Under the pieces are notes generated by a model. The model was not told the origin of the DNA. It saw only the letters and a list, made by a program, of their open reading frames with translations, and did no database searches. From the IMG/VR virus record IMGVR_UViG_3300028840_001395, positions 1 through 64,000 of that record: a stretch of DNA of 64,000 nt; one strand, given 5' to 3'. The position numbers were made by a program, and so were the translations under genes. Below, piece by piece: positions 4,704 through 63,540 of this stretch (position 1 is the first letter of the stretch; every line of letters begins with the position of its first letter).

Positions 4704-6335
4704 CTACTCGGCGGAGCCCTTGACGCCGAAGACGCTGCTCACGTCCGGCTCGGAGTCCCAGAGCTGCGACAGCTCGTTGACCTCGTTGCCCCCGGCGGGG
4801 GCGGGCTGGACGTGCCCGACCTTGGCGACGCCCTTGGACGCCTTCTTGGGCTGCGGGCGCTGGGTGGCCTTCTTCTTGCCGCCCTCCTTCTCGTCCTTGT
4901 CCTTGGCCTCTTCCTCGTCCTCTTCCTGGATGGTCTCGGCGGCCTCTTCCTCGGCCTCCTCCTCATCCTCCTTCTTCTCTTCCTCGTCCTCGGACTTCTT
5001 GGACGCGACGCGCTCGATGTCGCCGCCGAAGATGTCCATCAGGAGCGAGTCGTCCTCGGTGATGACCGAGTCCTCGGTGGCCAGGCCCATCGGGTCGCCC
5101 TGCATCGAGAACATGTCGGCCTCGACGCTGGACTCCTTGTCGGAGTCCTCATCGGCCTCCTCGTCCTGGTCGTCGTCGCCGTTGTCGTCGCCGTTGTCGT
5201 CGTCCTCGTCATCCTCGGACTTCTTCTTGGCGGCCTCCTTGTCGGAGCTGTCGTCGTCCTCGTCATCCTCGGACTTCTTGGCGGACATGATCTCCATGCC
5301 CTCCTCGATCATCTCCTCCATGCCCTCGACGCCATCGTCCTCGTCCATCATCTCGGCCAGCATGGCGGCCTCGTCCGGATCGAGGTCGGTGTAGAGGTCA
5401 TCGACCATCACGTCCTGGGCGTAGAAGGAAGCGACCACCTCATCGCGGGCGATGATGCCGTCACCGTCGGTGTCGAGGCTGGCGAACACGGCCTTGCTTC
5501 CGCGCCACTCGTCCTGGCTGACGAAGCCATCGTTGTCCGTGTCGAACTGGTCGAACATCACGGCGATGGGGTTGTCCGGGCTGGCGGTGTGCTCGTCCTT
5601 CGCGGTCGCGGCACCCTCGGCACGCTCCTGCTCCTCGGTCTGGGGCTTGGGAGCGAGGGTGTCACCCTTGGGGTCGTTCTGGTCGGCGTTCTTGAGACCC
5701 TTCACCTCGGCGGTGAGGGCTTCGAGCTTCGCCATCACGGACTCGGCGGAGTACTTGGGGCCGCAGGCCATCTCGACGTCCTCCTCGACCTCGACCTCCT
5801 CGTCGTCCTCGGCCAGAAGCGCATCGACCATCTCGTCCTCGACCATGACCTCATCGTCCAGCATCAGGTCATCCTGGGCGAGGAAGCCGCCACCGAGGCG
5901 CTCCAGGGTCTTGTTGAGCTGCTCGTCGGGCATGTCCATGTAGTCGAGGGCCTGGTCCTCGACCATCTCGGTCGAAGCCTCCTTGCCCAGCGTGTGGCGG
6001 GCGAGGCGGATGCACTTGTCGGCCTTCTTGACGACCTGGGCGCGGAGGCTCTTGGCCGACTTCGGCAGGCGCGGCTGACGCTTGTGCGCCGGGTGATCCT
6101 GATCCTCGACATCGTAGCCAGGGTCTGCCGGAGGGTTGCCGTCCGGATAGGGCGGCGGATGGACATCCTCGGCCCACGAGGACGTGTCACCGTTCTCGTA
6201 CTGGCTGGCCTCGGGGTCCTCCTGGGTGTGCGCCGGGTGGCCCTGATCCTCTGTCCCGTAGCCAGGGGTTGCGGGCGGAGCAGACGCCTTGCGATCTGTC
6301 GCCTGCCGCCTCGTCATGCGGTTACGCTTGCTCAT
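4704..6335 (-). CDS. Acidic scaffold-like head protein with EF-hand pair
   Basis: Between protease and capsid genes; very D/E-rich; DTDNDGFVSQDE and DTDGDGIIARDE canonical EF loops. Confidence 0.65.
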   Translation of the reverse strand: MSKRNRMTRRQATDRKASAPPATPGYGTEDQGHPAHTQEDPEASQYENGDTSSWAEDVHPPPYPDGNPPADPGYDVEDQDHPAHKRQPRLPKSAKSLRAQVVKKADKCIRLARHTLGKEASTEMVEDQALDYMDMPDEQLNKTLERLGGGFLAQDDLMLDDEVMVEDEMVDALLAEDDEEVEVEEDVEMACGPKYSAESVMAKLEALTAEVKGLKNADQNDPKGDTLAPKPQTEEQERAEGAATAKDEHTASPDNPIAVMFDQFDTDNDGFVSQDEWRGSKAVFASLDTDGDGIIARDEVVASFYAQDVMVDDLYTDLDPDEAAMLAEMMDEDDGVEGMEEMIEEGMEIMSAKKSEDDEDDDSSDKEAAKKKSEDDEDDDNGDDNGDDDQDEEADEDSDKESSVEADMFSMQGDPMGLATEDSVITEDDSLLMDIFGGDIERVASKKSEDEEEKKEDEEEAEEEAAETIQEEDEEEAKDKDEKEGGKKKATQRPQPKKASKGVAKVGHVQPAPAGGNEVNELSQLWDSEPDVSSVFGVKGSAE

Positions 6336-7950
6336 GGTCTCCTCCTTGAGCTTCCCTTGACCCTCCCGAGGCCCTTCCCCTGGAGAGCAACTTGCTTAGA
6401 CGAAGAATAGTCTTGGATTCAGAAAGCGACGGCTCACGACCCATCGCGGTCGCACAGGCGCTCCTGAAATCCTCGACGGTGCGGTACTTGGTGTGGCGGC
6501 CAACTTCGAGGGCCACCCTGTAGATCGGAACGGGCACCTGGATGCCCGCACGAGCGTTGAACGAAGCCACGGCCTCCAGAAGCTCCACATCAGACCTCGC
6601 GGTCTTGGCCAGAGCATCCAGGCCAGCCAGGTAAGCCCGGCGGATTCTGGTGTTGGCCTCCTTGACCACGTTGTCATTGGGGGCCATCGAGGAATCTTCC
6701 AGGGCTTCGTCCACCGTGTCCTGGCGGAGCTTGTCCTTGATACGGGTCTTCACCCGGTCGAGAACGAACTGCTCCAGCTCCTGCTCGACATCTTCGAGCG
6801 GGGCCTTCGGTTCCTCCGCCTCGTCACCACCCTCATCTTCACCACCCTCGTCCTCGTCCATCCAGCCCGAGAGGAAGCCGTTGGCCTGGATCGGGTCGGT
6901 GATGGTGAACTTCTGACGGGCGGGGGTCTCGAACGTGGTTGAGATGATATCGGCACCCTTGGATGCCTGGCTGGCAAGCTGGGCGTCGCTCTGGGCCACT
7001 CGATCAGGAATGACAGCATCCGAGAATCGAGTGGGGACGACGCCTTCGGCCAGGTTGGCAGCCTTGAGCTGAGCGTCCGGCGACCACTCGGGCGGCGGAC
7101 TGGCCAGAACCTTGGCTGCCCGGCTGGTGATCTCCGGCGTCGGCTCCAAGATGTTTCGCATGACCGCGCCCGTGAAGGCCGGGACACCGACCCAGGAACC
7201 CTCCACGAACATCACGCCGCCCGTGGGGTCGAGATCCTGGTGCCCACACAGCTCCGCGATGAGGTGGCGTCCGCCCTGCTCATCGAAGAAGGTGTTGCCC
7301 TTCATATACTTGATATGAGGGCACATCTCGGTTTCGTCGGCTGCCCAGTGACCACACTTGGTGCAGATGGTGCCATCGACGGTGCAGCCCATTGACAGGG
7401 TGCCCATCTTGCCGTTCTCGATGGCCTTGATCAGCTCGGTGTGCTTGCGGTCGGTGGCGATGAGGATATCCACGTAGATCGAGTCCCCGATGTCGCGTGC
7501 GACGGCATCGATGATGCGACCCTTGGACAGCTCCTCGACCTGGACGTGCTCCACGAAGTTGTGGGCACCCACGAACGTCGGGTACGCCTTGGCCAGAACA
7601 TCACGGTTCCAGGCGTCCTTGTTGTTGTTGATGTACTTCTGGGTGCCCGGCGTGATGCGGAAATCCGGGTAGCGCAGATCCACCTTGAACCCATCCACGA
7701 CCTGGGAGCCCCTCTTGGTTCCCGGCGGAGTCACCGAGTCCACGGAGGCGATGATGGTGGCGTGGGTCAGGAGGAAGTCCTTGGGGCTGAAGGGCTTGGA
7801 GAAGAACTCGGAAGCCCGCTCGATGAGGTTGTCCTTCAACCCCTCTGCGGCGATCTTGGTGCCCTTCCCGGCGACCCGGATGTTCGCCCACTGGGTCTTG
7901 CTCACCGAAGGGTGAACCAGATGGGCGTCAGCGGTCTTGGGCATCGCCAT
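6322..7950 (-). CDS. Prohead maturation protease (HK97/assemblin-like) with Zn-binding insert
   Basis: NFVEH, GRIIDA, LSMGC, CTKCG..CPH, FVEGSWVGVPAF motifs; ATG at 7950 overlaps upstream stop. Confidence 0.8.
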   Translation of the reverse strand: MAMPKTADAHLVHPSVSKTQWANIRVAGKGTKIAAEGLKDNLIERASEFFSKPFSPKDFLLTHATIIASVDSVTPPGTKRGSQVVDGFKVDLRYPDFRITPGTQKYINNNKDAWNRDVLAKAYPTFVGAHNFVEHVQVEELSKGRIIDAVARDIGDSIYVDILIATDRKHTELIKAIENGKMGTLSMGCTVDGTICTKCGHWAADETEMCPHIKYMKGNTFFDEQGGRHLIAELCGHQDLDPTGGVMFVEGSWVGVPAFTGAVMRNILEPTPEITSRAAKVLASPPPEWSPDAQLKAANLAEGVVPTRFSDAVIPDRVAQSDAQLASQASKGADIISTTFETPARQKFTITDPIQANGFLSGWMDEDEGGEDEGGDEAEEPKAPLEDVEQELEQFVLDRVKTRIKDKLRQDTVDEALEDSSMAPNDNVVKEANTRIRRAYLAGLDALAKTARSDVELLEAVASFNARAGIQVPVPIYRVALEVGRHTKYRTVEDFRSACATAMGREPSLSESKTILRLSKLLSRGRASGGSREAQGGDHEQA

Positions 7951-8549
7951 CAGAGCGCCTCCAGCAGATCGGGGTCGGGCTGGAACTCCACGTAGGACGG
8001 ATCTCCCAGAATGTCCTCCCGCTTGATGAGGAACAGGCAGTTCCCGCATCCCAGCAGGGGGACACTCTGTCCGCTGCGCCGCTTGTAGATGGCCTTCCTC
8101 AGTGCCTCCTGCTTGCACTTGGGGCACAGGTAGCTGCCGGAGTCCAACTCCCCCTGCGTCGCCTTGTACTGCCGGTCGGCAGAAGCCCAGTAGATGGCCT
8201 TCTTGACGAAGGCTCGGGCCACCCGCTCACGGGTGTTGTGGTCAGACGAAGTGTGGGGGAGCTTGTCGGGGCCACCAGGGACATCCACCGTACCTGCTCC
8301 ACCGGGGATGTTGTCGTCCCCGACCTCGGGGGGCTGGTAGTCCTTGGACTCATACCGCTGGAGATCCTCGACAGCCATACGGGCGGAACCTGTGGAGAAC
8401 TCCACATCCACCATGCCGATTGCAGGCCAGACGGCCTGCACTCTCCCGCTCTGGGCCGCGTGCTCCAGGATGGGATACACGATGTCCCCGACCTGGAACT
8501 CCTTGGCCCGGCGCTGGTAATCGACGTATGCCTGCTTGGTCTTCGGCAC
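7950..8549 (-). CDS. Hypothetical virion protein, SH3-like N-terminus plus C4 zinc ribbon
   Basis: FQVGDIV..GRVQAVW; CPKC...CGNC; carries RERVARAFVKKA motif. Confidence 0.7.
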   Translation of the reverse strand: MPKTKQAYVDYQRRAKEFQVGDIVYPILEHAAQSGRVQAVWPAIGMVDVEFSTGSARMAVEDLQRYESKDYQPPEVGDDNIPGGAGTVDVPGGPDKLPHTSSDHNTRERVARAFVKKAIYWASADRQYKATQGELDSGSYLCPKCKQEALRKAIYKRRSGQSVPLLGCGNCLFLIKREDILGDPSYVEFQPDPDLLEAL

Positions 8550-8567: not shown

Positions 8568-9269
8568 CTACGCGGTCAGGACGTAGCCGTGGGAGGCCTT
8601 CTTCTCCTTGGCCTCCTCTTCCTTCTCTTCCTGCATGGACTTGGCGGCCTCCTCCTCGGAGTCGTCGGCGGCCTTCTTCTTGCCGCCTTCCTTCTCGTCG
8701 CCGTCGTCCTTGTCCTTGGCCTCTTCCTTCTTCTTCTCGATGTTCTTCAGGAACTCGGGAGGAAGATCCTTCTTGGCCTGGCGAACGACGGTCGCGGCGA
8801 GGTTGAGCGCCTTCTCGACCTGGGCTGCGGCCTCCTTGGGGAGGTCACCCTCACCGATGGCGGCAGCGAGGCCACCGAGGGCAGCCTGGACGCCGGGGCG
8901 CGGGGCCTGGGGATCGGTCGTGATGCGGTCGGGGCCGATCTCGCCGCCCTGCTGCTTCTCGCGCAGCTCGCGGTTCTCCTGCTGCGAGAACTCGCCCTTC
9001 ATGTAGGCCTCATCCGGCTCGTCCTCCAAGGGACCGGCCTTCTCACGCCCGATGTCGTCGGGGTCGAAGCCCTGCTCCTTGACGACATCATCGCCGGTCA
9101 GTGCGACCTTCTCCAGATGATCGGAGAGCATGTCACACCGCAGCGAGAAATCGTGAGCGATCCGCTTCTCGACCCCGAGGGTCTGGAAGTCCACCTCGAA
9201 CAGGTTGGCGAGCCGATCCAGGTCCGCTGTCACGGCCTGTGCGCCCTTCTTGGTCAGCTTCTGGGTCAT
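8568..9269 (-). CDS. Hypothetical head-associated protein with charged C-terminal tail
   Basis: AGGAGG RBS before ATG 9269 (MTQKLTKK); late motif upstream; tail shared with the scaffold-like protein. Confidence 0.75.
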   Translation of the reverse strand: MTQKLTKKGAQAVTADLDRLANLFEVDFQTLGVEKRIAHDFSLRCDMLSDHLEKVALTGDDVVKEQGFDPDDIGREKAGPLEDEPDEAYMKGEFSQQENRELREKQQGGEIGPDRITTDPQAPRPGVQAALGGLAAAIGEGDLPKEAAAQVEKALNLAATVVRQAKKDLPPEFLKNIEKKKEEAKDKDDGDEKEGGKKKAADDSEEEAAKSMQEEKEEEAKEKKASHGYVLTA

Positions 9270-12200
9270 CGTCTGGTTCCTCCTCCGAGTTCCATCCGTG
9301 GAAGCTCTGCTTGGGCACACACTTGCCCTTCGCTTATAAGGTTCCACGTATAGAAAGAAGATTGAAAAACTTTGGGCGAAGATGCGAAACTTTGAGCCTC
9401 TTTGCCCTGCGACTTGTACTTCTTGTCGAGATTCCCGATGTCCTGTTCCTCGACCGTATCTCGAATTTGTGCCCCCGTCAGAGAGTCCGGAGCAGGTTCA
9501 CCTATGATCTCACGGGCAATATCCTGGGCAATCTCGACCTGCTGGACACGAGCCTTGTTCGAGACTTCGTTGCACTTATTGATCTTTTCCGGGTCACCCT
9601 CGGCATCTGCCAGGCACTTCATCAGCTCCTTCTGGATCTGGGCGAACCGCTTATCGTTCCGCAGCGCCCCCTGGGCCGACTTGACCTTTTCGTCAACCTC
9701 ATCCTGGTCGTCGGTGCCATTCTCCCCCTTCCGGGCCGTCTCGGTCAGGAAAGCGTGGATCGTGGTCATCCCGTCCAAGTGGAGGTCTTTCAGCATATCG
9801 GTCAGAACCTTGGCGGACTGCTTGTCCTCGTCCTCATCCGAGGAAGCCTTCTCCTTGATCACCTTGATCATGTCCTTGTAGGGGCCGTTTTCACCCCCTA
9901 CCAAGGAGTACAGCTCATCGTCGGACACCTCTGACATCACCCCCTGTACAAGTTCCCGGCCAGCCGGGCTGTGGAACTCATCCGTGGACATCCCGACGAG
10001 CTTCATCGCCTCGCCCTTCTTGTGAAGGGCCTTGACCAGGGCCTTCATCTCATCGGCGGGTTCCTCCCGGAGGGGGGATATCTTCTCGTCGTTGACCAGG
10101 GCGGCCATCGCCAGGCCATTGGCGATGTTCTGTAGCTCCGCGAACTTGTTCTCATCATCCGTATCTTCGAGCAGCTTCTCCATCTGGGCGATGGCAGCCC
10201 CTCGAAGTTCGGGGGTCATCTTGGAGTACTCCTGGAACGCCTGCTCGGTACGCTGGCGGAGAGCATCCGCGTCCTTGGGCTGGTCGTTGACCTTGGTGCC
10301 TCCAACCAGGGTGGGGTTGGAAACAACCTTCCTGGCCAGCGTCTTGGCAGCGAGGGCCTTGGCGCTGTCCCGGAGGTTCATCCCCTGGCCGAAAGTGTCC
10401 TTCTTCAGCGCCTTGGTGGCCTCTGCGATGGTCTTGTCGGAGAGAGCGTCCCCAGAGAACACGCCCGTCTTGAGCTTCTCAAGCTCATCGGCGTAGGCCA
10501 TGAGGATGGCCCGCTTGTCCTCGTCGCTCTCGACACCCTTGAGTTCCGCCGCGAAGTTGGTATCCCCGACCTGGCGGGCCACGTTGTCGATCTTGTCGAT
10601 GTCCGCCTGGAGCTTCTTCTTCTCGGCCTCGGCCTTCCGCTGCTCAGCCTCTTCCTCAAGGCGCTGCGCCTTCTGGGCGAGGGTTTCTTCCTCAACCTCG
10701 GTCTTCTCATCGGGTGTCAGAGGCTCTCCCTTGGCCTTCTCGGCATCAGAGAGAGCCTTGGACTTCTCAGCCAGGCTGAGACTGACTTCCTCATCCCCCT
10801 TGCCCTTTTCGGCATTCCTCTCATCTGCATCGTCAGGATCGAGCTTGCCCGCAGCCATCGCAGCGGCATTCGCCTCATTCTTGGCGTGGCTATACTCGCC
10901 ATCGGGGAGTCGGAGCCCCCACTCGCCGTTCTCCTTCTGCCAGTAGTCGCCGGGCTTCTTATCCTTGCTGTCCTCGGGAACCTTCCCGGCCAGCCGGTCG
11001 AGCCAGCGCATGGCAACCCGCTTGTAGTTGAGGGAGAGATCCTCGTCTGTGTCCGCCGTGCCGCCCTCGGTGTCCTCATCCCCCATGTCCACCCGCTTCT
11101 TCTTCAGATCCTTGCGGGGTGGCTTGAACTTCGGAGCGGGCTTGACGAGATCCTCGACAGCCTCATCTTCCTTCTCGGCGTGGGTCTTGGTGGCGCGGCG
11201 CGTCATGTAGGTGTGGCCCGGACCCTTGCCCGTCTCCACGAAGCCTCGCTGCTTGAGCATCCTCACGGCATGGGGATTCACGGCATCGAGGCAGAACTTG
11301 ATGTCTGGGAACGGATCGGTCAGGTCATCGTAGTTGCTGATGGCGATGTCCATCAGCTTGCTGCCCAACGCCTTGCGCTGCCAGGCGGGGTCCACCACGA
11401 TGTCGAACTCGTAGCACTCCCGGTCACCAGAATCCGACGAGTCGAACAGAGCTGCCACAAGCTGTCCGTCAACCTCGTATCCGGCTACCCAGTCCTGGTG
11501 AGACAGGACACGGATGCCTACCCGCTGTGCGAGATCCCACGGGTCGGAGCCACGAGGGATGCGCCAGACGAGCTTCGGGGATCCTGCGGTGAGGATGTCC
11601 TCGAACTCCTGGCGGTAGCGGTCGATGATCTCGATGACCTCTGCGAAGCCACCCCCTGCAGCCTGCTTGTCCAGCTTGGTCTTGACCTGGCCCGTCGCCA
11701 GGAAGGTGTCTTCGAGGCCCGGAACGAGATACTGGCTCTTGAGGGTCGAAGGCTCGTGGCCGACCTCCTTGGCGGTCTCTTCCAGAGCCTTCTTGAACTC
11801 CTCCTTGAACTTCTTCTCGCGTTCCTTCTTGTCGTCCGGGGCTGGGTTGCCCTTGTTCCGGATGGCCTTGAGCTTGTTCTGCATCACCCGGTTGGCGTGC
11901 AGCCCCCGGATGTCCTTGGCCGTGATATCCATCGGCTTGAGGTAGTCGTTGACCGTGGTGGAATCGACCTTCACGTCGTCCACCTCGAACACCGGATCGG
12001 TGCCGGACTTGTCCTTGACGGCCTCCCGCAAGACCCGGACGATATCCGGGTCACGGGTCTCCTTCTTCTGGCTCACCCCGGACTTGCCGACGTACTTGAT
12101 CGTGGCCTTGTCCTTACCCACCGTGACGTGCTTGGCCTGCCAGCCGGTGACACCGAAGTGACCTTCCTTGGCCGAGTCGGGGTTGCCCACGCGCTCGTAG

Positions 12201-15200
12201 GTGTCATTGATGAGACCCACAGCCAACGCCGTGAGACGGGTCTTGAGGTCGTCAGAGGACAGATCCTTCTTGACCTTCTTCTGGAGGTCACCGAGCTTCC
12301 CACGGAGCTTCTCGACCCGCTTGGCCTTCTCCCGGTTCCGATGCTGAACCTGGCCTTCCGAATACTCGTAGACTGTGGTGGTGCCCTTGCCGTCCGCCTT
12401 GGGCACTTCCTTCTTCTTCTGGTACTTGGCGGCTACTCGCTCCGCCGGAGTCGCGTTCGGGTGAAGCTCCCGCCACCGCTCGTAGGGAGTCACATTGTCG
12501 CAGTCCGTGGACTCCTCACCGTAGGGGGACTCGATCTCGATGTCCCCGACGCACTCATCGGTCGTCTCCAGAACCTCGGCCCAGACGTACTCGGGCTCGC
12601 CGGTCATCGGCCCGAACACGGCACGCTCACCTTCCTCGAAGGCTTCGCCGTCAGCGGCCATGCGGGAGGCGAAGCGGTCAGCCACGTTCTCGACCAGCGG
12701 GGCGTCGCTGATGAGGAGAGGCACCGAATCCTCGGGGATGACCCAAGAGCCGATCTCCTTGCCATCCTCATCATCGAGTTTCAACTCGGTGTACTTGACG
12801 TTAGCTGCAGCCCGCTTCTTGCGAGGTCTCTTACGGGGTTTCTTGCGGGGCTTCGGCTTGGGCTTGTCCTCGTCGCCTCCGCTTCCCCAGATGCGCTCGA
12901 AGTCCTCCAGATGCTCTTCGGGCAGCTTCTTCATCACGGCCAGCGCAGAGGCATCGCAGAAGTGCTCCTGGGGATGGGTCGATGAGTAGGGCGTCGGGTA
13001 GTTCTTGTTCGCCCGTGCTGACCGGAGCAGCACCTTGCGGATCTCATGAATGGGGATGGGGAGCACCCTGTCCTGGTTCGGAACCTGGAACCAGTAGTTT
13101 TGGTCGTCCATCTTCTCCACGAAGAACGGCCCCTTGATGCGGCGCATCCTGATGGGAAGCTCATCACCCACACCCGGCATCTCGATCTCGGGGGTCTTCT
13201 GACCCACCCGGATGTGGTGCATCTCCCACTCACGCTGGGCCTTCTTGTCCCCGAACTTCTGCCACCACCGATGCGACAATTCGTGGATGATGTTGTGAAC
13301 CACATCCATGTTGAACCGGGCGAAAGGCCGGATATACATGTCGTCCCGCTTGCCGTTGTACCAGGCCATTGTCTTGGCTTGCTGTAGCTGCGGGACGATG
13401 AACACGTCGCCGTAGAGGGTCTTCTTCAGAGTCGCCGGAACCTTGGCTGCCCGGATGAGCTTCGCGGCCTTGTTGATCGTCTTCTTGACGTTCTCCAGCT
13501 TCTTGCCCGTCAACCCCATCGTGTTGTGAACCATGAACGGGCCGAGCTTGAACTTCTCCTCCGTCCCCTCCACCTTGTCGCGCCAGTGCTGGGTCGCGTT
13601 GAGGAAGTCGATGTGCCGCTGGGTCTTCTCCATCCACGGCCCGAACTTGATCGGCATCCGGCGGGCGGACATGAAGTGCCGGGCCGCCAATTCCAGACCC
13701 TTGTGCTTCTTCGCTGGGACGTGCTTCAGGTCGAGCACGCCTTGGGCCACATTCCGGCCATGAACGACGAGCCAACCCCAGGGATTCTTGAGTTGCCTCT
13801 TGATATGGCGATTCTGGAGGGCCTCGGGAGGCACCTGGCGAAGAACGTCTTTCAGGGCCTTCCAGAGTCCCATCAACTCCTGATAGGAATTGGCCAGGTC
13901 TGCGGGGGTTGTGAGCGTCGCCTGCTTCTGGTATCGGAGGGCTACCCGCTCGGCAGATGCCTGCTTCTCCTCGGGCCACGGCTCGGGAGCCGGGCGGATC
14001 TTGAACAGCTTGAGTTCCTTGTTCTGCTTCCGGCCCTTGGGGTAGGGCTCGACCGTGACCACCACATCGCCTTTCGAGTCGGTCTTGAAGCCCTTGATCT
14101 TGCCCTTCTTGTTCTTGTACTTGCCGTAGAGAACCGAGTCTCCGATGTTCAGCTTGAATGTGGCTGCGATCTTCCCACCCTGCACCTCCGAGGGCACCTG
14201 GTAGTAGACGATATCGTCCTCATCGCGCACGTTCAGCCGGTGCGGGGTCTTCTTGAGCATCGAGACCCCCTTCTCGAAGGGAATCATCTTGGCGTTCTTC
14301 AGCACCACATCCCTGTTCCAGACCACCTCCTCGGGATACCCATACTTGGGCACCGTGGGAGTCTGGAACGTGATGGCAACGAGCTTCTCGCCCATCTCGG
14401 GCTTGATGTGCGTGGTCTGCACTCTGGGAACGAAGTGCCCCCAGCGGGACGACACGGCGGTCACGTTGTCCGTCCCGAACTTCTTGTATGGGGGCCTCAT
14501 CTTGAGCTTGCCGTCAGCCAGAATCAGGCGTGCCCGGCGGTTGGTCGTGAAGTGGACGAACGCATCGTCCTTCACGTCCATCAGGTAGTGGGTGTGCTGG
14601 TCTTGAATCGGCGTTCCCAGCCACACCATCCACTCGGGATGAGCCTCGGGAGCCCCTCGGAGGGCCATCTTCGTTCGCCCCCACTCACTGGCATCATCGA
14701 ACATCACAATGAACTCAGGCTGACCGCGAAGTGCCCCCGTGCGCCCCCCGCCCAGCGCCTGACGCACCTTCTTCTCCAGACGACGTGGATTGGCAGCCAG
14801 CACAGGGTCAATCAGGAGAGCCTGGCGGGCGGCCTCGGTGATCTTCTGGAACTCCTTGCCCGTCAGTCCGAACTCCGAAGCGAGTGCCCTCATGTCCATG
14901 ACCTTGCCCGGCTGGGCCAGGACAGCAACGAAGGCATCGGACTCATCGGCGCTCATCTGGACGGTGATCTCGCGGACACGCTGCCGCTGCCGGGCATCGA
15001 GGAACCCCAAACGCTTCCCGGTGGGCATACCCAAGTCCATCAGGTCGAACAAGGTCGCCAGGTCAGCCTTCTTCTCGGCCCAGTTGCCCAGTGCCGAGGC
15101 GAAGCCCTTGTCCTTGCGGGCGATGTCCTTGACCACATCGAGGAGACCCAGGCGCTTCATCTCCAGCAGGGCCTTCTTGCCCACTCCGCCCTCATAGAAC

Positions 15201-16693
15201 GTGTCGATGATCATGTTCGACAGGTGGGACGGCGGGACGTTCTGGAGCTTCTGCCTGTTCCGCTTGATGGAGGCTTCCACGTCCGGGGCGATCTTCAGGC
15301 CATACTTGAGCAAGAACTTGATGGCCCTCACCATCCGGCTCGGGTCGTCCGCGAACACCTTGTCAGGGTTCTGGGGGCACCGGGCAACGCCCTCCTGCAA
15401 GTCCCGCAGGCCACACCCCGTCAGGTCGATGATCTCGGCCTTGTCCGGCCCCTTGGCCAGGTCGAGCAGCCTCCACATCAGCGTGTTGAACGTGAACTCC
15501 CGACGAATCACGTCCTCCTCGATGGTCGAGGGCTCGACCATGTGGGGCTTGTAGCCCTTCCCGGCCTGACCGCCGTAGCTCTCCTTGCGGGCGTTGGCGA
15601 TCTCGATGACCTCACCGTCGAGGTTGGCCCCTCCGACCTCCCAGTCGCCCTTGATGGTCAGGATGGCCACGCCGTAGTTGTTCGTGGTCAGATTGGTCGG
15701 GACAGGAATCGCCCTCTGGAGCTTCTTGGCGAACCACTCCGAATCACGACCAGCCGCGATGGAGTCAATCACCACGTCGATGTCCTTGATAGGCTGGTTG
15801 ATCACGAAGTTGCGGACGGCTCCACCCACGACGTAGGTGTCCTTGGCGACCCCGAGCTTCCGGGCCACGTCCGAGAGGAACTTCATCAGCGCCCGGCTGG
15901 CCTGGTCGGTCATCTCGGACAGGTGTGTCGAAGCCACTCGATTGGCAGTGGCACTGCCAAAAGGAATGGTCTGGAGCTTCGGGAGCCCCCAGACCTCGAT
16001 GTTATCGAACTCCCAGTCGCCTTGGGGCACATCGCCCTTGTAGACCGCCGTGAGGCCGTCCAGGTAGGCCAGAGTGACGTGGGGGCGGTAGATGAGCGGG
16101 AACTTGTCGTCCACCCGAAGGCCTGCGTCAATGAGCTTGTCGCGGAGCTTCCAGCGAATCCCGGCCATGTCGTGACTGTAGCGGATGCCCATCAGGGCGA
16201 CCCTGCGGCCCTTGTCGGGATGGACGAAGTATTCGGGGCCTTGGAGATGGGCTCGAACGGGCTCCCGGATCTCCGCGAAAGCCTCCCGCGAAGCGTTGAG
16301 GAACGCTTCTTCCTGGTCTGCCGGGACGTTCCCGACGTAGAGGAATGTGGCGTGGGGCTTGGACTTGTCCTCGTCGCCCAGCGGGGGGAACTGGCCTGCA
16401 AGCTCCTTCGGGACAGGGATGAAGAATCCGACCCCGGTGCGGTCGCCGGTCTTCTTGCCGTCCTGGGAGTCGGCCTTCTTCTTCGGCTTTGCCGGATCCT
16501 CGCCGTACTTCTTGCCGACCTGGCCGCCCTCGACCTCGCGGTGCTTGACGATATCGCCCTCGTGCTCCTTGCTCCAGGACTTCCAGTGCTTGTCGCAGAA
16601 CCAGGCCCGGCCCCGGCCCTCGGCCCAGACACACTCATGGGTCGGGGGCTTGCTGCATTCCATGCACTTCGACATGGAATGGCGGCCAGCCAT
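9266..16693 (-). CDS. Giant polyvalent virion-associated protein: Zn finger, 2H phosphoesterase, CCA/poly(A) nucleotidyltransferase, ART-like, SH3-like, zincin, topoisomerase IB, GNAT, helical tail
   Basis: PHATF/PHVTL (2H); GGAVRN..KDID, RREFTFN, DDPSR (class II NTase); HFTT...I..G.L; HELSH..QEHF; YERVGN, GKSG, KDIRG, GH...QY (TopIB); VVDPAWQRKALGSKL (GNAT). Start chosen at ATG 16693 with GGAG. Confidence 0.85.
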   Translation of the reverse strand: MAGRHSMSKCMECSKPPTHECVWAEGRGRAWFCDKHWKSWSKEHEGDIVKHREVEGGQVGKKYGEDPAKPKKKADSQDGKKTGDRTGVGFFIPVPKELAGQFPPLGDEDKSKPHATFLYVGNVPADQEEAFLNASREAFAEIREPVRAHLQGPEYFVHPDKGRRVALMGIRYSHDMAGIRWKLRDKLIDAGLRVDDKFPLIYRPHVTLAYLDGLTAVYKGDVPQGDWEFDNIEVWGLPKLQTIPFGSATANRVASTHLSEMTDQASRALMKFLSDVARKLGVAKDTYVVGGAVRNFVINQPIKDIDVVIDSIAAGRDSEWFAKKLQRAIPVPTNLTTNNYGVAILTIKGDWEVGGANLDGEVIEIANARKESYGGQAGKGYKPHMVEPSTIEEDVIRREFTFNTLMWRLLDLAKGPDKAEIIDLTGCGLRDLQEGVARCPQNPDKVFADDPSRMVRAIKFLLKYGLKIAPDVEASIKRNRQKLQNVPPSHLSNMIIDTFYEGGVGKKALLEMKRLGLLDVVKDIARKDKGFASALGNWAEKKADLATLFDLMDLGMPTGKRLGFLDARQRQRVREITVQMSADESDAFVAVLAQPGKVMDMRALASEFGLTGKEFQKITEAARQALLIDPVLAANPRRLEKKVRQALGGGRTGALRGQPEFIVMFDDASEWGRTKMALRGAPEAHPEWMVWLGTPIQDQHTHYLMDVKDDAFVHFTTNRRARLILADGKLKMRPPYKKFGTDNVTAVSSRWGHFVPRVQTTHIKPEMGEKLVAITFQTPTVPKYGYPEEVVWNRDVVLKNAKMIPFEKGVSMLKKTPHRLNVRDEDDIVYYQVPSEVQGGKIAATFKLNIGDSVLYGKYKNKKGKIKGFKTDSKGDVVVTVEPYPKGRKQNKELKLFKIRPAPEPWPEEKQASAERVALRYQKQATLTTPADLANSYQELMGLWKALKDVLRQVPPEALQNRHIKRQLKNPWGWLVVHGRNVAQGVLDLKHVPAKKHKGLELAARHFMSARRMPIKFGPWMEKTQRHIDFLNATQHWRDKVEGTEEKFKLGPFMVHNTMGLTGKKLENVKKTINKAAKLIRAAKVPATLKKTLYGDVFIVPQLQQAKTMAWYNGKRDDMYIRPFARFNMDVVHNIIHELSHRWWQKFGDKKAQREWEMHHIRVGQKTPEIEMPGVGDELPIRMRRIKGPFFVEKMDDQNYWFQVPNQDRVLPIPIHEIRKVLLRSARANKNYPTPYSSTHPQEHFCDASALAVMKKLPEEHLEDFERIWGSGGDEDKPKPKPRKKPRKRPRKKRAAANVKYTELKLDDEDGKEIGSWVIPEDSVPLLISDAPLVENVADRFASRMAADGEAFEEGERAVFGPMTGEPEYVWAEVLETTDECVGDIEIESPYGEESTDCDNVTPYERWRELHPNATPAERVAAKYQKKKEVPKADGKGTTTVYEYSEGQVQHRNREKAKRVEKLRGKLGDLQKKVKKDLSSDDLKTRLTALAVGLINDTYERVGNPDSAKEGHFGVTGWQAKHVTVGKDKATIKYVGKSGVSQKKETRDPDIVRVLREAVKDKSGTDPVFEVDDVKVDSTTVNDYLKPMDITAKDIRGLHANRVMQNKLKAIRNKGNPAPDDKKEREKKFKEEFKKALEETAKEVGHEPSTLKSQYLVPGLEDTFLATGQVKTKLDKQAAGGGFAEVIEIIDRYRQEFEDILTAGSPKLVWRIPRGSDPWDLAQRVGIRVLSHQDWVAGYEVDGQLVAALFDSSDSGDRECYEFDIVVDPAWQRKALGSKLMDIAISNYDDLTDPFPDIKFCLDAVNPHAVRMLKQRGFVETGKGPGHTYMTRRATKTHAEKEDEAVEDLVKPAPKFKPPRKDLKKKRVDMGDEDTEGGTADTDEDLSLNYKRVAMRWLDRLAGKVPEDSKDKKPGDYWQKENGEWGLRLPDGEYSHAKNEANAAAMAAGKLDPDDADERNAEKGKGDEEVSLSLAEKSKALSDAEKAKGEPLTPDEKTEVEEETLAQKAQRLEEEAEQRKAEAEKKKLQADIDKIDNVARQVGDTNFAAELKGVESDEDKRAILMAYADELEKLKTGVFSGDALSDKTIAEATKALKKDTFGQGMNLRDSAKALAAKTLARKVVSNPTLVGGTKVNDQPKDADALRQRTEQAFQEYSKMTPELRGAAIAQMEKLLEDTDDENKFAELQNIANGLAMAALVNDEKISPLREEPADEMKALVKALHKKGEAMKLVGMSTDEFHSPAGRELVQGVMSEVSDDELYSLVGGENGPYKDMIKVIKEKASSDEDEDKQSAKVLTDMLKDLHLDGMTTIHAFLTETARKGENGTDDQDEVDEKVKSAQGALRNDKRFAQIQKELMKCLADAEGDPEKINKCNEVSNKARVQQVEIAQDIAREIIGEPAPDSLTGAQIRDTVEEQDIGNLDKKYKSQGKEAQSFASSPKVFQSSFYTWNLISEGQVCAQAELPRMELGGGTRR
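9350..9365 (-). promoter_or_regulatory. Putative late promoter TCAAT-N7-CTAT
   Basis: Minus strand tcaatcttctttctat, ~80 bp upstream of the 9269 start, inside the 3' end of the giant ORF. Confidence 0.6.
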
Positions 16694-16694
16694 C

Positions 16695-17666
16695 CTAGCT
16701 CCAGGAAACGACTTCAAGGGGCATCCCTTCCCAGACTCGACCCTCATAGAGCCTCATCAGCTTGTCCAGGAACCACTCGTGGGATGCCGGATCCCACGGG
16801 GCATTCCCATCCGCACCGGGCCAATCCGGATTCTGGACAGCGAACTGACCCTCCCGTGCCCCGCCTCGCCCCAGCGTTCGGGGGAGCATGTAGATGCTGT
16901 ACCCCTCGTCCTGGGCGATATCCTTCAGATATCGGTATAGATACGGAGCTTCCGGGCTGTCCCTGAAAGCTCCCTCGATGACGATAGGGACTCCGGGAGG
17001 CACGTCATCCTGCACGTTGATGGTGATGGAACCCTCTGGAACACGGGCCTTGATATACTTGGAGGCCACACGCCTCGATGTCCGCATCTGGAGGATCTTC
17101 CCCGCGTCCTCCTGGGCAAAGTGCCACATGGACTGGACGGTGGAGGCAAACGCCGAGTATAGCTCCTCGGCTGACCTCTCCTGCCCATGACAGGTGACAT
17201 CCGGGTCGTCACAGTGCCGGGCGTTCCGGTAGTCCAGATACATCTGGGCCAGCTCGTCCCGCTTCGCTTTCGGAAGGGCCATGAGGGACTTCATCGGGAC
17301 GCCCAGGATCTTGACCGCCTCATCCACCCACTCGTTCTTGGGCCAGCACACGGGGTTCTTGTCCTCGACACACCTGAAAACGAACTCGAAGACCGCCCGA
17401 AGCTCCTCGGGTTGAGCGGGCCGACCCCAGACGTAGCGGTAGGACTGATCGATGTCCGCCAGGACATCTCCCATCATGTCGGCAGGGCCATCCCCGTTGT
17501 ATAGCTCGGTGCCGTCGTATCTGCCGGGCGGCTCGACATGAGCACCAGGTTCGCCCGGCTGGATAGTCCACCAGCCCGCTGTCCGCTCCAAGTGCGCGAG
17601 AACCTTACGCATCTGGCTTCGGGCTGCGACTTTCTGGGACAGGATCTGGCGCACGCGGGCCTCCAT
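16695..17666 (-). CDS. Hypothetical virion protein (modular)
   Basis: Late motif upstream; QKVAAR and RRVASKYIKA motifs. Confidence 0.7.
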   Translation of the reverse strand: MEARVRQILSQKVAARSQMRKVLAHLERTAGWWTIQPGEPGAHVEPPGRYDGTELYNGDGPADMMGDVLADIDQSYRYVWGRPAQPEELRAVFEFVFRCVEDKNPVCWPKNEWVDEAVKILGVPMKSLMALPKAKRDELAQMYLDYRNARHCDDPDVTCHGQERSAEELYSAFASTVQSMWHFAQEDAGKILQMRTSRRVASKYIKARVPEGSITINVQDDVPPGVPIVIEGAFRDSPEAPYLYRYLKDIAQDEGYSIYMLPRTLGRGGAREGQFAVQNPDWPGADGNAPWDPASHEWFLDKLMRLYEGRVWEGMPLEVVSWS

Positions 17667-17697: not shown

Positions 17698-17713
17698 ATA
17701 GGACTAGAAACGA
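17698..17713 (-). promoter_or_regulatory. Putative late promoter variant (TCGTT-N7-CTAT)
   Basis: Same spacing as the other copies; overlaps portal stop codon. Confidence 0.45.
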
Positions 17714-19736: not shown

Positions 19737-19990
19737 TTCGGCCCCCACTTGTGCTTCTTGGTCATCTGGCCCTTCTCGTAGGCGGCCTTGAGCACCTTCT
19801 TGAGCTTCCGGATATCGGTGGGGGAGCCCTTGAAAACCCGCTCCCACGACCCTCCGGCTCGCACAAACACGTCGGAGATCAAGCTGAACTCCTCCGGCAC
19901 GTATTCTACCTTACCCTCCAAGGTCGAAACTGTCAGCTTCTTGATGAACCGATGGTCGGCCCGAACAGGGCTACGGGGGTCAATGTCCAT
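19733..19990 (-). CDS. Hypothetical protein
   Basis: Translationally coupled to TerL. Confidence 0.65.
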   Translation of the reverse strand: MDIDPRSPVRADHRFIKKLTVSTLEGKVEYVPEEFSLISDVFVRAGGSWERVFKGSPTDIRKLKKVLKAAYEKGQMTKKHKWGPK

Positions 19991-41531: not shown

Positions 41532-41544
41532 GCGTCACCTCTTG

Positions 41545-42127: not shown

Positions 42128-42159
42128 CTTTCTATCTCCCGTGGGTGGCTGCCAGCACA

Positions 42160-42755: not shown

Positions 42756-42786
42756 GACCTCGCCTCCGTGGAGGATTCTACCACAC

Positions 42787-43026: not shown

Positions 43027-43027
43027 G

Positions 43028-61431: not shown

Positions 61432-61452
61432 GAACGTAGTGTGGAAAGCCTG

Positions 61453-63540
61453 TCAGGGGGCGGAGTTGGCCCACTCCTCGTAGGATGAAGGTTGGCCGAA
61501 CCAGCGGGTGATCTCCTGGTCGGTCTTGCCTTCCATCCAGCGGGTCGTGATCCGCTCGATCATCACGTCGGAGGCCCGACGCTTCCGCTTCTGCTTCTTG
61601 ATCACGTCGGCCCAGTCGGGCTTCTTCTGGAACCAGGGGATGCGGTTGGACTCGAACTTCTGCTGAATCTCACCCAGGATGGAACTGTTGCTCCACAGGG
61701 CATCGAAGAACAGCTTCCAGCCCTTGGGCCAGTACTTCTGGCTCAAGTCTGTCGGCTGAACGCCGACCACTTGGGCCACTTCCTTCTTGGCGGGGATGCG
61801 GCTCTGGTTGACCACGATGTCCAGCCAGGCGGACATCACATCTTCAGTCTTGCCCTTCCCCTGCCAGGAACGCCGCATCACGTCACGGATCTTCTTCCCG
61901 AGGGGATCCTTGCTCCAGAGGACGAGATCCATCAGGTAGGAGCCAGCCTCCCGCTTCTCAGCCTCGGTGTCCGCGATCTCCAGTTCCTCGCCCTCGACGC
62001 CCACGGGAACCTGCTGGTGATACTTCTGGATGGTCTTGGCCTCGTTGACCACCTTCCGGCCCAGGTAGGCCTTGAGCTTGCCCCCGGCGACGGACTTGGG
62101 GGTCTCCGCGCCCTTCTTGATCTTGTCGCCTAGATTCTTCCCGGCCTCGTAGGGGGGACGCTTGAGGCCGGACTCGGAACCATCGAAGCTGAGGCCCATC
62201 AGCGCGGAGTTGAGGATGTCGAAGGGCTCGATGGGCACGCTGTAGGTTCTGGCGGTCGCCTTGATCGCCATCTCCAGGATGCCATACATCCCCGAGTACT
62301 TCTTGTCGAACCACTCCGGCTGGACAGAGAAGCCGTTGTCCGCGAACCAGGCCCGTGCCTGGTCGAGTCCACGCTGGCCCTTGTCGAACCAGGTGCCCAC
62401 CTTGACTCCGGCAGCCCCTTCGAGCACCTGGGCGCGGAGCATCTTGTCGTAATCGTCCGCCATCGAGGCCAGAATCCAGCGTGCGGCGACTCGGAAACGG
62501 GCATCCTTGATGCTGGCTGCCCTGAGCAGCTTGAGCACGGTTCTCGCGGTCTTGATGTTCATTTCACACCTATCCGATCTTGATGCCTTACGTCGGCGGA
62601 ACTTCTTGGAAAAGAGTATCTCGGGGTCAGGCCTCTGTTGGAACCAGGGGAGCCCTTCCATCTCGTATCGCTTCTGGAGCTGTGCCTGGAGACTCTGATT
62701 GGCCCAAAGGGCGTCGAACACCCTTCGCCAAGCCCTTGGCCAGTACTTCTGGCTCAAGTCCTGTGGGAGGACTCCGGCTCGTTGAGCGACTTCCTTCTTC
62801 GGGGGGATACGCTTCTCGGTCTCCACGATGTCGAGCCAGGTGTTCATCACCTCTTCGGTGCGGCCCGTGCCCGCCCAGGTTTTCCTCATGAAGTCGCGGA
62901 TCTTCCTGCCCAGTGAATCTTGAGGTTGTCTGAAGATGATCTCCAAGAGGAAATCTCCGGCTTCCTCATCGCTGGCTGGCACAGGGGCGTCGTAGTCTTC
63001 AGGCAGGGATTCAAACTTCTTCTGTCGATTGGCCTCGGTGTATATCCCTCTTACCATGTAGCCCTGAAGGTCACGGTTGGCGGCCACGTTTGGACTCATC
63101 CTTCCAGAGAGGATAGCCTCAGCCTGATTCTTCCCGGCCTCGAAGACGGGACGCGACTTCTTCAGCTTCTCCGGGTCGATGATGCTCAGACCCATGAGGT
63201 AGTCGTGGATGACCTCGTAGGGGTCGAGCGACAAGTTGAGCCTCTTGAGTGCCCGCTGGATCTCCTTCATCACGATGTTGTAGACCACGGTGGAATCCAT
63301 GTCGAACCAGCGAGGGTCGAGTTCGTATCCTCGGTCGAGGAAGTACTTCTCGGCCTGCTGGAGACCCTTCTTTCCACGCTTCCACCAGGTATCGGGACGG
63401 ACTCCAGCGACCCCTTCAAGCATCTGCGTCCGCATGAAACGGTCGTATTCGGTGGACATCGAGGCCAGAATCACCCGAACACGGGGGTCTGATCTCCCGA
63501 GGAGCTTGATGATCGCTGCCGCTACACGAATATCCATCAT
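61453..63540 (-). CDS. Internally duplicated protein with two HTH-containing units
   Basis: Two ~330-aa homologous halves, each with IP.KKEVAQ..GV.P.DLSQKYWP; late motif upstream (63574-63589). Confidence 0.8.
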   Translation of the reverse strand: MMDIRVAAAIIKLLGRSDPRVRVILASMSTEYDRFMRTQMLEGVAGVRPDTWWKRGKKGLQQAEKYFLDRGYELDPRWFDMDSTVVYNIVMKEIQRALKRLNLSLDPYEVIHDYLMGLSIIDPEKLKKSRPVFEAGKNQAEAILSGRMSPNVAANRDLQGYMVRGIYTEANRQKKFESLPEDYDAPVPASDEEAGDFLLEIIFRQPQDSLGRKIRDFMRKTWAGTGRTEEVMNTWLDIVETEKRIPPKKEVAQRAGVLPQDLSQKYWPRAWRRVFDALWANQSLQAQLQKRYEMEGLPWFQQRPDPEILFSKKFRRRKASRSDRCEMNIKTARTVLKLLRAASIKDARFRVAARWILASMADDYDKMLRAQVLEGAAGVKVGTWFDKGQRGLDQARAWFADNGFSVQPEWFDKKYSGMYGILEMAIKATARTYSVPIEPFDILNSALMGLSFDGSESGLKRPPYEAGKNLGDKIKKGAETPKSVAGGKLKAYLGRKVVNEAKTIQKYHQQVPVGVEGEELEIADTEAEKREAGSYLMDLVLWSKDPLGKKIRDVMRRSWQGKGKTEDVMSAWLDIVVNQSRIPAKKEVAQVVGVQPTDLSQKYWPKGWKLFFDALWSNSSILGEIQQKFESNRIPWFQKKPDWADVIKKQKRKRRASDVMIERITTRWMEGKTDQEITRWFGQPSSYEEWANSAP

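Follow-up and report, generated by a model that had tools for sequence, protein, structure and literature searches.

Short peptides that direct otherwise unrelated proteins into a viral or virus-like shell have been described in several systems. [quoted passage not shown] Phage polyvalent proteins are giant multi-enzyme polypeptides encoded beside the portal/terminase system, with rapidly shuffled domain content, and are predicted to be packaged and injected (PMC5512222). In encapsulins, a short N- or C-terminal peptide on a flexible linker docks diverse enzymes to the inside of an HK97-fold shell, and the cargo genes lie next to the shell gene. In giant phages such as phiKZ and SPN3US one short motif recurs in many head and ejection proteins and is tied to head maturation, the prohead proteases of these phages and of T4 cutting at AXE or (L/I)xE motifs with Glu at P1 and releasing N-terminal propeptides of 20-254 residues (PMC10052503). 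In herpesviruses, a short C-terminal tail tethers the scaffold protein to the capsid shell until an assemblin-fold protease cuts at Ala|Ser of the maturational (M) site.

Here a stretch of 64,000 nucleotides from the IMG/VR virus record IMGVR_UViG_3300028840_001395 (positions 1 to 64,000, hereafter the window) was compared with related loci of uncultured huge phages. The initial annotation had proposed that a peptide signal of the RVAxR[YWF] type is shared by late proteins and by domain junctions of a giant ORF, and that it is a portable tag docking cargo on the procapsid, with K/R-x-A sites cut by the protease encoded at 6322-7950. The observation is confirmed and is much stronger than that annotation could know, whereas its interpretation is only partly supported. 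Every copy it listed is present on the minus strand, at or within about 10 bases of the position given there (Table 1).

Table 1. Features of the head-gene neighbourhood and copies of the motif in the window. Coordinates of copies are those of the six-residue core, residue numbers are those of the Arg, and bit scores are from a matrix built only from related loci.
Feature	Coordinates	Strand	Details
Major capsid protein (MCP)	2891..3766	-	291 aa, HK97-type, no delta domain; weak Pfam Phage_capsid hit; tblastn matches to annotated major head proteins of phage G and Tunturi_5; 88-92% identical across the clade; RVARVY inside the fold, one of the weakest instances; candidate receptor
Acidic scaffold-like protein	4704..6335	-	543 aa, 29% D+E, net charge -101, EF-hand-type loop; relatives of this family have no tag; candidate partner of the basic tag
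RVASKK in the acidic protein	4995-5012	-	Weak copy
Prohead serine protease	6322..7950	-	542 aa from the true start (alignments to relatives); phrog_18299 at 2.8e-11; candidate partner of the tag
199-aa protein just upstream of the protease	7950..8549	-	Family free-standing or forming the C-terminal module of the giant ORF; in six relatives the protein ends just after the tag
RVARAF, res 109 of the 199-aa protein	8208-8225	-	Internal; orthologous tag conserved in relatives (18-27 bits)
259-aa module	8568..9347	-	No tag of its own in the window; free-standing or fused into giant ORFs in relatives
Giant polyvalent ORF	9266..16747	-	2493 aa, between portal and protease; Pfam: 2H phosphoesterase (res 128-234), PolyA_pol/CCA-type nucleotidyltransferase (304-454), topoisomerase IB (1468-1671), GNAT (1753-1836), plus unassigned segments; homologues in relatives 900-3091 aa with shuffled modules
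RVAMRW, giant res 1910	11003-11020	-	25.1 bits; C-terminal tag of the GNAT-containing module; LNYK-RVAxRW copy conserved in relatives; five break-points at +7
RVAAKY, giant res 1437	12422-12439	-	21.5 bits; N-terminal tag of the topoisomerase IB module; orthologous copy conserved across relatives; homology to solved Topo IB structures starts 10-20 residues later
NVADRF, giant res 1354	12671-12688	-	11.4 bits, weak; forms a pair with the RVAAKY copy 83 residues downstream
RVALRY, giant res 934	13931-13948	-	26.0 bits, best hit in the window
RVASTH, giant res 270	15923-15940	-	12.8 bits; joint between the 2H and nucleotidyltransferase modules; eleven fusion/fission break-points 1 residue away
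323-aa protein after the portal	16695..17666	-	Family fused to the N-terminus of the giant ORF in one relative
RVASKY, res 199 of the 323-aa protein	17055-17072	-	11.3 bits
KVAARS, res 12 of the 323-aa protein		-	7.1 bits, weak
Portal protein	17704..19401	-	phrog_16240 at 1.8e-28; 74 homologous loci; no tag
Terminase	19990-21864	-	
210-aa helical protein (25664 family)	25664..26296	-	Tag at both ends; 882 homologues
RVAHRY of the 210-aa protein	25685-25702	-	18.6 bits; 6 residues from the C-terminus
KVAARH of the 210-aa protein	26261-26278	-	16.5 bits; near the N-terminus
284-aa protein	26352..27206	-	Function unknown
QIADRY, res 7 of the 284-aa protein	27171-27188	-	16.4 bits; N-terminal variant; an orthologue has RVADRY at res 14
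Protein of about 100 aa	31044..31367	-	Function unknown; next to a sigma-factor gene
RVARRW of the ~100-aa protein	31296-31313	-	18.6 bits; conserved at the N-terminus in four orthologues
RVAARW and RITTRW in the orphan 61453 protein		-	Below 8 bits, poor flanks

The pattern RVAx[RK][YWFH] occurs 7 times in the window, against a mean of 0.12 in 2000 within-protein shuffles, none of which reached 7. In an unbiased scan of all 3-4-letter gapped patterns, RVAxxY, RxAxRW, RVA and RVAxR were the leading patterns that are not low-complexity or Cys patterns. A position-specific scoring matrix built only from 73 related huge-phage loci recovered the copies independently, giving 11 hits of at least 10 bits in the window against 0.45 in shuffles, and about 110 hits against 2 or fewer in shuffles in the relatives. 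Although the genome is GC-rich, so that Arg, Val and Ala codons are common, and the pattern was defined after looking at the sequence, chance, compositional bias or an in-frame translated DNA repeat is refuted as an explanation. The shuffles preserve composition, the motif recurs in relatives of 32-67% GC, placement is strictly positional, and codon usage points to selection at the peptide level, since all four bases occur at third codon positions and Arg is encoded by both CGN and AGR. The weakest instances are RVASKK, which no relative of that family has, the two copies in the 61453 protein, and RVARVY in the MCP.

All 11 matrix hits lie on the head-module side (4.7-31.4 kb) and none in the replication/repair half; 6 of 24 proteins in 2.8-31.4 kb are tagged, against 0 of 37 in 31.4-64 kb (Fisher p = 0.0024), so that the claim of absence from replication proteins holds. 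Tag density is 6.0 per 10,000 aa between portal and MCP against 1.8 upstream, and no full tag occurs in MCP, portal, terminase, protease or replication proteins. The claimed position at domain junctions holds for residues 270, 1437 and 1910 of the giant ORF, both on Pfam maps and on homology break-points; it is unproven for residues 934 and 1354, where the flanking segments have no assigned domains.

Across the clade, 24 of 112 hits have 4-18 residues before the Arg (4.6 expected) and 15 of 112 have 3-9 residues after the aromatic residue (3.5 expected). The giant ORFs show 156 distinct fusion/fission joints, and 30% of fusion/fission break-points lie within 15 residues of a tag against 4% at random, with subject C-ends falling 1-7 residues after the Arg and subject N-ends 5-20 residues before it, although several well-supported module joints have no tag of 12 bits or more. 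Tags occur in 13 unrelated homology groups and move between N-terminus, C-terminus and internal joints among orthologues. Of 120 classified representatives of the 25664 family, 51 have tags at both ends, 26 at the C-end only, 25 at the N-end only and 18 have no detectable tag, while in a fused form the tag sits at the joint. The accompanying enzymes change between relatives and include 2H phosphoesterase, CCA-type nucleotidyltransferase, topoisomerase IB, GNAT, pyrophosphatase (InPase), PAP2 and C39 peptidase; the set is diverse but dominated by nucleic-acid and nucleotide enzymes, so that the “arbitrary enzymes” of the initial annotation is an over-reach.

The consensus, derived from about 107 unique sites, is [S/L]-A-x-R-V-A-[S/A]-R-[Y/F/W]-[L/M]-x-[R/K], a peptide of about 10-12 residues predicted to form a basic amphipathic helix on a flexible linker. 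Its helical hydrophobic moment is 1.47, against 0.07 for a strand. The AF2 model of the 25664 protein places both tags on separate short helices joined to the core by unstructured linkers, and the family alignment shows variable low-complexity linkers.

The K/R-x-A cleavage site is not supported. It occurs in 30% of downstream flanks, 39% of upstream flanks and 16% of random segments, the flanks being simply Lys- and Ala-rich (K 1.9x, A 1.3x), and no position after the motif is conserved as K-x-A. [quoted passage not shown] The identity of the protease is supported by its position in the head module, by 42% identity to the annotated head maturation protease of Tunturi_5 and by BFVD matches to phage G gp19 (3e-10) and to entries named prohead serine protease, while a PDB search was uninformative. 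Alignment and an AF2 model of this protein indicate a disordered N-terminus with a conserved I-R-V-A-S/G, a beta-rich core with a Cys/His cluster, an acidic linker and a C-terminal helical bundle. The nearly invariant R-V/T-A-S of the N-terminus is a possible self-processing site, and within the motif Ala at +2 is nearly invariant (103 of 107) and +3 is Ser or Ala in 60 of 107, resembling the Ala|Ser sites of assemblin-type proteases; these features fit a protease site as well as a docking helix. Location at module joints and the precedent of giant-phage proteases cutting many head proteins at a short motif (PMC10052503) also speak for a cleavage site. Whether the protease cuts at or near the tag was not assayed. 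However, separately encoded modules keep a complete tag near their ends, where cutting would only remove a few unconserved residues, leaving selection for the whole motif at termini unexplained. Arg at +4, the aromatic residue at +5 and Leu at +6 are as conserved as the putative P-side residues, +3 also tolerates Arg, Asp, Gln and Leu, Glu is found at position -1 in only 8 of 107 clade sites (although in 5 of 12 window copies), and RVARVY lies inside the MCP fold. A pure cleavage site is considered unlikely.

Similarly unlikely is a short linear motif for some other partner, such as a phage or host hub protein, DNA, or an exit/ejection signal for passage through portal and tail, acting after or independently of head assembly. 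Terminal motifs on flexible linkers are typical of hub-binding peptides, the helix carries Arg at i, i+4 and i+8, which could contact nucleic acid or an acidic surface, the cargo is mostly nucleic-acid enzymes, and the 31044 gene lies next to a sigma factor rather than in the portal-to-MCP block. On the other hand, tags concentrate between portal and MCP and are absent from the replication, repair and transcription proteins that would most need a DNA or hub tether. The clade spans 32-67% GC and therefore very different hosts, so that a host partner would have to be universal, and the invariant Val-Ala and the aromatic residue argue for a specific protein pocket rather than plain DNA binding.

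The most likely reading, to which we assign a probability of roughly 0.55, is that the motif is a portable docking tag, or address label, for proteins loaded into the procapsid and probably delivered to the host with the DNA. The portability of the motif, the changing set of enzymes it accompanies and its absence from MCP, portal, terminase and replication proteins form the pattern that a cargo-loading tag would give. In this view each cargo module carries its own tag at its N- or C-end, and when modules are fused into giant polyvalent proteins the tags end up at the joints; a site needed only to separate domains would not be kept on separately encoded modules. The receptor would be a conserved part of the prohead interior, with the very conserved MCP, the extremely acidic scaffold-like protein and the clade-specific C-terminal helical domain of the protease as candidates. 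The existence of the motif, its selection at peptide level, its conservation across the clade, its strict terminal or junction placement and its association with head-module cargo are established by the present analysis, whereas binding to the procapsid, the identity of the receptor and any coupling to proteolysis are inferences. No complexes were modelled, so that the receptor is a guess, and there is no direct evidence that any of these proteins is in a virion: no cultured relative carries the motif, and no virion proteomics exist. The outgroups phage G and Tunturi_5 lack both the tag and the C-terminal extension of the protease. The function of the 25664 protein, as of the other unannotated tagged genes, is not known.

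Compared with the T4 CTS, a fair analogy, the tag is likewise a short conserved peptide on otherwise unrelated proteins, but it is found at the N-end, the C-end, both ends or internally, has a different consensus, lacks a conserved Glu-ending site and has no demonstrated cleavage; sufficiency for packaging a foreign protein was not measured, and the phage lineage, with an MCP related to that of phage G, is unrelated to T4. The giant ORF and its relatives fit the description of polyvalent proteins (PMC5512222) in combining several unrelated catalytic domains, in lying beside the packaging genes and in rapidly shuffling their domains. Neither the MuF nor the zincin-like MPTase domain stressed in that work appeared in Pfam scans of the giant ORF and nine relatives, although remote homology is not excluded, and that paper does not describe a conserved inter-module peptide, the word “linker” not occurring in its text. 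Encapsulin peptides share terminal placement, a flexible linker and diverse cargo, but they are Gly/Ser/Leu-rich and not basic, act in DNA-free compartments and show no sequence resemblance to the tag; the conserved HK97-type MCP is compatible with luminal binding but is not evidence for it, and binding to the MCP was not examined. In contrast to the AXE and (L/I)xE sites, the motif has no conserved Glu, lies within a few residues of either terminus, is a helix-like element, and has no copy in portal or MCP (beyond RVARVY) and only a partial R-V-A-S in the protease. The herpesvirus case involves a single scaffold protein rather than a portable tag on many cargo proteins; a combined model of docking followed by a cut inside the tag at R-V-A|S would work the same way, but cleavage here is only a conjecture.

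It is possible, though unlikely on present evidence, that the tag is a readable “packaging code” of a whole clade of uncultured huge phages and works by multivalency. In this hypothesis the basic Arg/Tyr-bearing tags act as stickers, spaced along polyvalent proteins and placed at both ends of an abundant bivalent helical protein (the 25664 family), which co-assemble with the acidic scaffold-like protein into an internal cargo body in the prohead, and a cut by the prohead protease inside the tag then releases the cargo for ejection. If so, the ejected effector set of any member of the clade could be read from its sequence alone, and foreign proteins could be loaded by adding about 12 residues at either end.

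The huge-phage contig IMGVR_UViG_3300028840_001395 comprises 435,804 bp, and the window, which is its first 64 kb and has 62% GC, carries its real genes, recognised by a GC1/GC2/GC3 pattern of about 0.6/0.4/0.8, exclusively on the minus strand. The locations of the head module, read in the direction of transcription, and of the other features discussed here are listed in the table. The giant ORF encodes four enzyme domains, namely a 2H phosphoesterase, a PolyA_pol/CCA-type nucleotidyltransferase, a type IB topoisomerase (Topo IB) and a GNAT acetyltransferase, which is the architecture of the phage “polyvalent proteins” of Iyer et al. (PMC5512222). Genes at 21.8-31.4 kb had no match in Pfam or PHROG searches, whereas those at 31.4-60 kb encode transcription, replication and repair functions: a sigma-70 region 4 protein, a NusG-like protein, clamp loader, PD-(D/E)XK nuclease, RlaP, Tpt1, polynucleotide kinase/phosphatase, DNA methylase, Mre11/Rad50-like proteins, RecA, RecD2 and a ribonucleotide reductase with an insertion that is probably an intein. 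RNA-end repair functions occur in two sets, one as a free-standing cluster and the other inside the tagged polyvalent protein, which suggests pre-packaged and later-expressed counter-measures to tRNA-cleaving host defences.

Locations of the features discussed, in window coordinates in the direction of transcription, followed by loci of relatives (L handles)
Location	Strand	Feature
61453-63585	-	710-aa orphan protein
62476-62493	-	RVAARW in the orphan protein
61537-61554	-	RITTRW in the orphan protein
55012-57855	-	Ribonucleotide reductase (class II-type alpha domains) with a LAGLIDADG-type insertion at residues about 164-229, probably an intein
40027-43999	-	Free-standing cluster of RlaP nucleotidyltransferase, Tpt1/KptA 2'-phosphotransferase and polynucleotide kinase/phosphatase
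31416-32680	-	Sigma-70 region-4 protein and NusG/KOW-like protein, side by side, directly after the tagged 31044 gene
19990-21864	-	Large terminase
17704-19401	-	Portal
16695-17666	-	323-aa protein
9266-16747	-	2493-aa giant ORF
9266-16747, residues 128-454	-	2H phosphoesterase plus CCA-type nucleotidyltransferase inside the giant ORF
8568-9347 and 7950-8549	-	Two small proteins
6322-7950	-	Prohead serine protease (true start taken from alignments to relatives)
4704-6335	-	Extremely acidic, scaffold-like protein (29% D+E, net charge -101)
4704-6335, residues 257-300	-	EF-hand-type calcium-binding loop (Pfam EF-hand_1, 2.6e-9)
3782-4474	-	230-aa protein
2891-3766	-	291-aa HK97-type major capsid protein (MCP) without a delta domain
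767-1150	-	S-adenosylmethionine decarboxylase gene (PF02675, 1.8e-32), just beyond the capsid gene
L004:11759-20173, residues 164-610	+	PolyA_pol nucleotidyltransferase domain of a giant polyvalent ORF, interrupted by an intein with a LAGLIDADG endonuclease (Intein_splicing and LAGLIDADG_3)
L007:4211-5119, L012:3901-5577, L040:3456-4403	+	Tagged papain-like Peptidase_C39-type proteins upstream of the portal
L028:2022-2792 and L028:770-1882	-	Divergent tag variants of the low-GC subclade
L029:11760-12440, L052:11606-12280	+	Divergent tag variants of the low-GC subclade

The observation made in the initial annotation, a peptide signal of the RVAxR[YWF] type shared by late proteins and polyprotein domain junctions, is confirmed, and every instance it had picked out is present. 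The pattern RVAx[RK][YWFH] occurs 7 times in 20,923 aa, against a mean of 0.12 in 2000 within-protein shuffles, none of which reached 7. An unbiased scan of all 3-4-letter gapped patterns places RVAxxY, RxAxRW, RVA and RVAxR at the top, once acidic or basic low-complexity and Cys patterns are set aside. A search with the portal identified 73 further loci in IMG/VR at 50-73% identity, from genomes of 32-67% GC and contigs of up to 536 kb. In the ORF sets of these relatives the loose pattern [RK][VI]A.[RK][YWFH] occurs 97 times in 428,235 aa, where about 10 or fewer would be expected by extrapolation from the window shuffles. A 12-column PSSM, built and iterated on the relatives alone, finds about 110 sites of at least 14 bits, against 2 or fewer in shuffles, with the consensus [A/P/S/L]-[S/L/A]-[A/P/S]-x-R-V-A-[S/A]-R-[Y/F/W]-[L/A/M]-x, to which C-terminal copies often add a further Arg at +8. 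Applied to the window, which it had never seen, the same PSSM gives 11 hits of at least 10 bits against 0.45 in shuffles and recovers almost exactly the instances of the initial annotation. A DNA-level repeat is rejected by codon analysis, as third codon positions of the motif use all four bases and Arg is encoded by both CGN and AGR; selection is therefore on the peptide and not on a DNA element.

The initial annotation had staked its proposal on the motif being commoner in late proteins than in controls, and this expectation held. All 11 window hits lie in 4.7-31.4 kb, where 6 of 24 proteins are tagged, against 0 of 37 in the replication half (Fisher p = 0.0024). In relatives, tag density is 6.0 per 10,000 aa downstream of the portal, against 1.8 upstream, and no full copy is found in the MCP, portal, terminase or protease, or in the 3782, 21872, 22563, 23118, 27566 and 28142 families (families are named after the coordinate of their window gene). 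The orphan 61453 protein carries a strict RVAARW and a RITTRW with poor flanks, and it is unclear whether these are real tags; as a pattern search retrieved no relatives of this protein from IMG/VR, conservation of the two copies was not assessed. The low-GC (32-33%) subclade has divergent variants near C-termini that score under 10 bits, “...LIADKFM” 14 residues from the end and “RVASRLA...”; the consensus may have drifted there.

The motif is also positioned with respect to protein ends and module boundaries. Of 112 sites in relatives, 24 have only 4-18 residues before the Arg (4.6 expected) and 15 have only 3-9 residues after the aromatic (3.5 expected), followed by a sharp gap before the next distances, which are 31 residues or more. 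Among giant ORFs, 30% of 574 fusion/fission break-points lie within 15 residues of a tag, against 4% for random positions, and the ends of free-standing homologues fall 1-7 residues after the Arg (a C-terminal tag) or 5-20 residues before it (an N-terminal tag). The Topo IB module has an N-terminal tag (“RVAAKY...”), which is not part of the Topo IB fold, as homology to solved Topo IB structures begins after it, whereas the GNAT-containing module has a C-terminal tag (“LNYK-RVAxRW”).

Portability is most evident in the 25664 family, in which a conserved helical core is flanked by variable low-complexity linkers. The large protein database holds 882 homologues, all unnamed; of 120 cluster representatives, 51 have the tag at both ends, 26 at the C-end only, 25 at the N-end only and 18 have none of at least 10 bits. 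The Arg is mostly at residue 6-9, mostly 5-7 residues follow the aromatic, and in a fused relative the tag sits exactly at the fusion joint. The identity of this family was sought without success, as neither Pfam nor PHROG gave a hit and the AF2 helical bundle has no significant PDB neighbour (best E about 0.9). The 7950, 8568 and 16695 families are free-standing in some phages and fused into the giant ORF in others, and in six relatives the 7950-type module ends immediately after its tag. The 31044 family keeps an N-terminal tag in four orthologues of 55-60% identity. Altogether, tagged proteins fall into 13 unrelated homology groups, and the cargo domains across the clade are 2H phosphoesterase, CCA-type nucleotidyltransferase (once with an intein, in the related locus L004, where the intein lies inside a presumably packaged effector), Topo IB, GNAT, inorganic pyrophosphatase, PAP2 phosphatase, C39-like cysteine peptidase, a tRNA-ligase CPD-like domain, DUF5661 and DUF5856. 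The tagged C39-type proteins of some relatives, which have no counterpart in the window, are either packaged cysteine peptidases aimed at the host or a second processing enzyme for the cargo.

An AF2 model of the 25664 family alignment (mean pLDDT 71) gives a confident helical-bundle core at residues 56-178, with both tags forming separate, lower-confidence helices (4-13 and 191-209) joined to the core by unstructured linkers. The consensus has a helical hydrophobic moment of 1.47, against 0.07 for a strand, with Val, Ala, Tyr and Leu on one face and Arg at 0, +4 and +8 on another. No intramolecular docking was seen in the AF2 models, where the tags and the protease N-terminus are low-confidence and undocked.

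Taken together, these results make a portable procapsid-docking tag the best explanation, with a probability of roughly 0.55. The occurrence of the motif, its selection at the peptide level and its placement are direct results of the comparison, whereas the docking role is a reading of this pattern and the candidate receptors are inferred only. The decisive argument for a docking tag over a mere domain separator is that separately encoded modules keep a complete motif a few residues from their end, at either end, where a site needed only to cut a polyprotein would have no reason to persist. The pattern matches cargo-loading peptides such as the T4 capsid targeting sequence, which is shared by otherwise diverse internal proteins and usable to load foreign proteins (PMC3012670), and encapsulin cargo peptides. 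One candidate receptor is the MCP, which is 88-92% identical across relatives of 32-67% GC whose portals are only 50-73% identical, an unusually strong constraint on a shell protein; co-variation was not pursued in depth, and the MCP is equally conserved in subclades with divergent tags and so gives no signal. Another is the acidic scaffold-like protein, whose charge complements the basic tag and whose EF-hand-type loop, with a second similar D-x-D-x-D-G loop visible in the sequence about 30 residues later, is unusual for a phage head-assembly protein. The third is the confident C-terminal helical bundle of the protease (residues about 434-527), a domain absent from the tag-less outgroups phage G and Tunturi_5, whose proteases are 309 and 288 aa. 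These cultured relatives have a related MCP and protease but no tag in their head modules, and so offer no proteomics on tagged proteins.

The interpretation offered in the initial annotation, a portable tag docking cargo on the procapsid with K/R-x-A sites cut by the protease, is partly supported. The K/R-x-A site is no more frequent after the tag (30%) than before it (39%), and both values exceed random segments (16%) only about as much as the Lys/Ala-rich flanks predict, so that the site was rejected as compositional. Linkers between paired tags share no second conserved motif. Glu at -1, which could have served as a T4/phiKZ-like P1, is seen in 5 of 12 window copies but in only 8 of 107 clade sites, and the T4 and phiKZ/SPN3US-type rule of Glu at P1 (PMC10052503) does not apply across the clade. 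A different link to the protease nevertheless remains possible, since Ala at +2 is nearly invariant, +3 is usually Ser or Ala, and the protease family has a nearly invariant R-V/T-A-S in its disordered N-terminus. It is conjecture, but a cut inside the tag (R-V-A|S) could release docked cargo at maturation, as happens at the Ala|Ser M-site of herpesvirus scaffolds. For the fold of the protease, a sequence profile and a Foldseek search of the PDB were both uninformative, and only the viral predicted-structure library gave matches. The protease alignment further revealed an invariant Cys/His cluster (C189, C196, C199, C210, H212) inserted in the protease domain, suggesting a zinc site, and a roughly 100-residue acidic disordered linker before the C-terminal helical bundle.

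Phages are known to package proteins for delivery with their DNA, but a defined, transferable address peptide is known essentially only for T4. The general concept of address peptides and packaged polyvalent effectors is known, whereas this peptide, its position-independence, its one-tag-per-module logic and its spread through a large uncultured clade are not: the motif is not described in the T4 head review (PMC3012670), the SPN3US maturation proteomics (PMC10052503), the polyvalent-protein paper (PMC5512222) or the jumbo-phage overview, and further literature searches found no description of such a packaging peptide in huge phages. In the docking view, this tag would be a second and different address peptide, one that is position-independent (N-end, C-end or internal), conserved across a large, globally distributed clade of uncultured 200-540 kb phages and attached to shuffled enzyme modules of giant polyvalent proteins. 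If the docking role holds, it offers a compact handle for loading proteins into HK97-type shells, and makes the long-standing question of how ejection proteins are recruited into proheads directly testable with a dozen-residue peptide. It would also give a sequence-only way to predict which proteins these phages inject, here RNA-end repair enzymes, a CCA-type nucleotidyltransferase, topoisomerase IB, an acetyltransferase, phosphatases and a cysteine peptidase, and would explain how polyvalent proteins can gain and lose modules freely, because each module brings its own tag.
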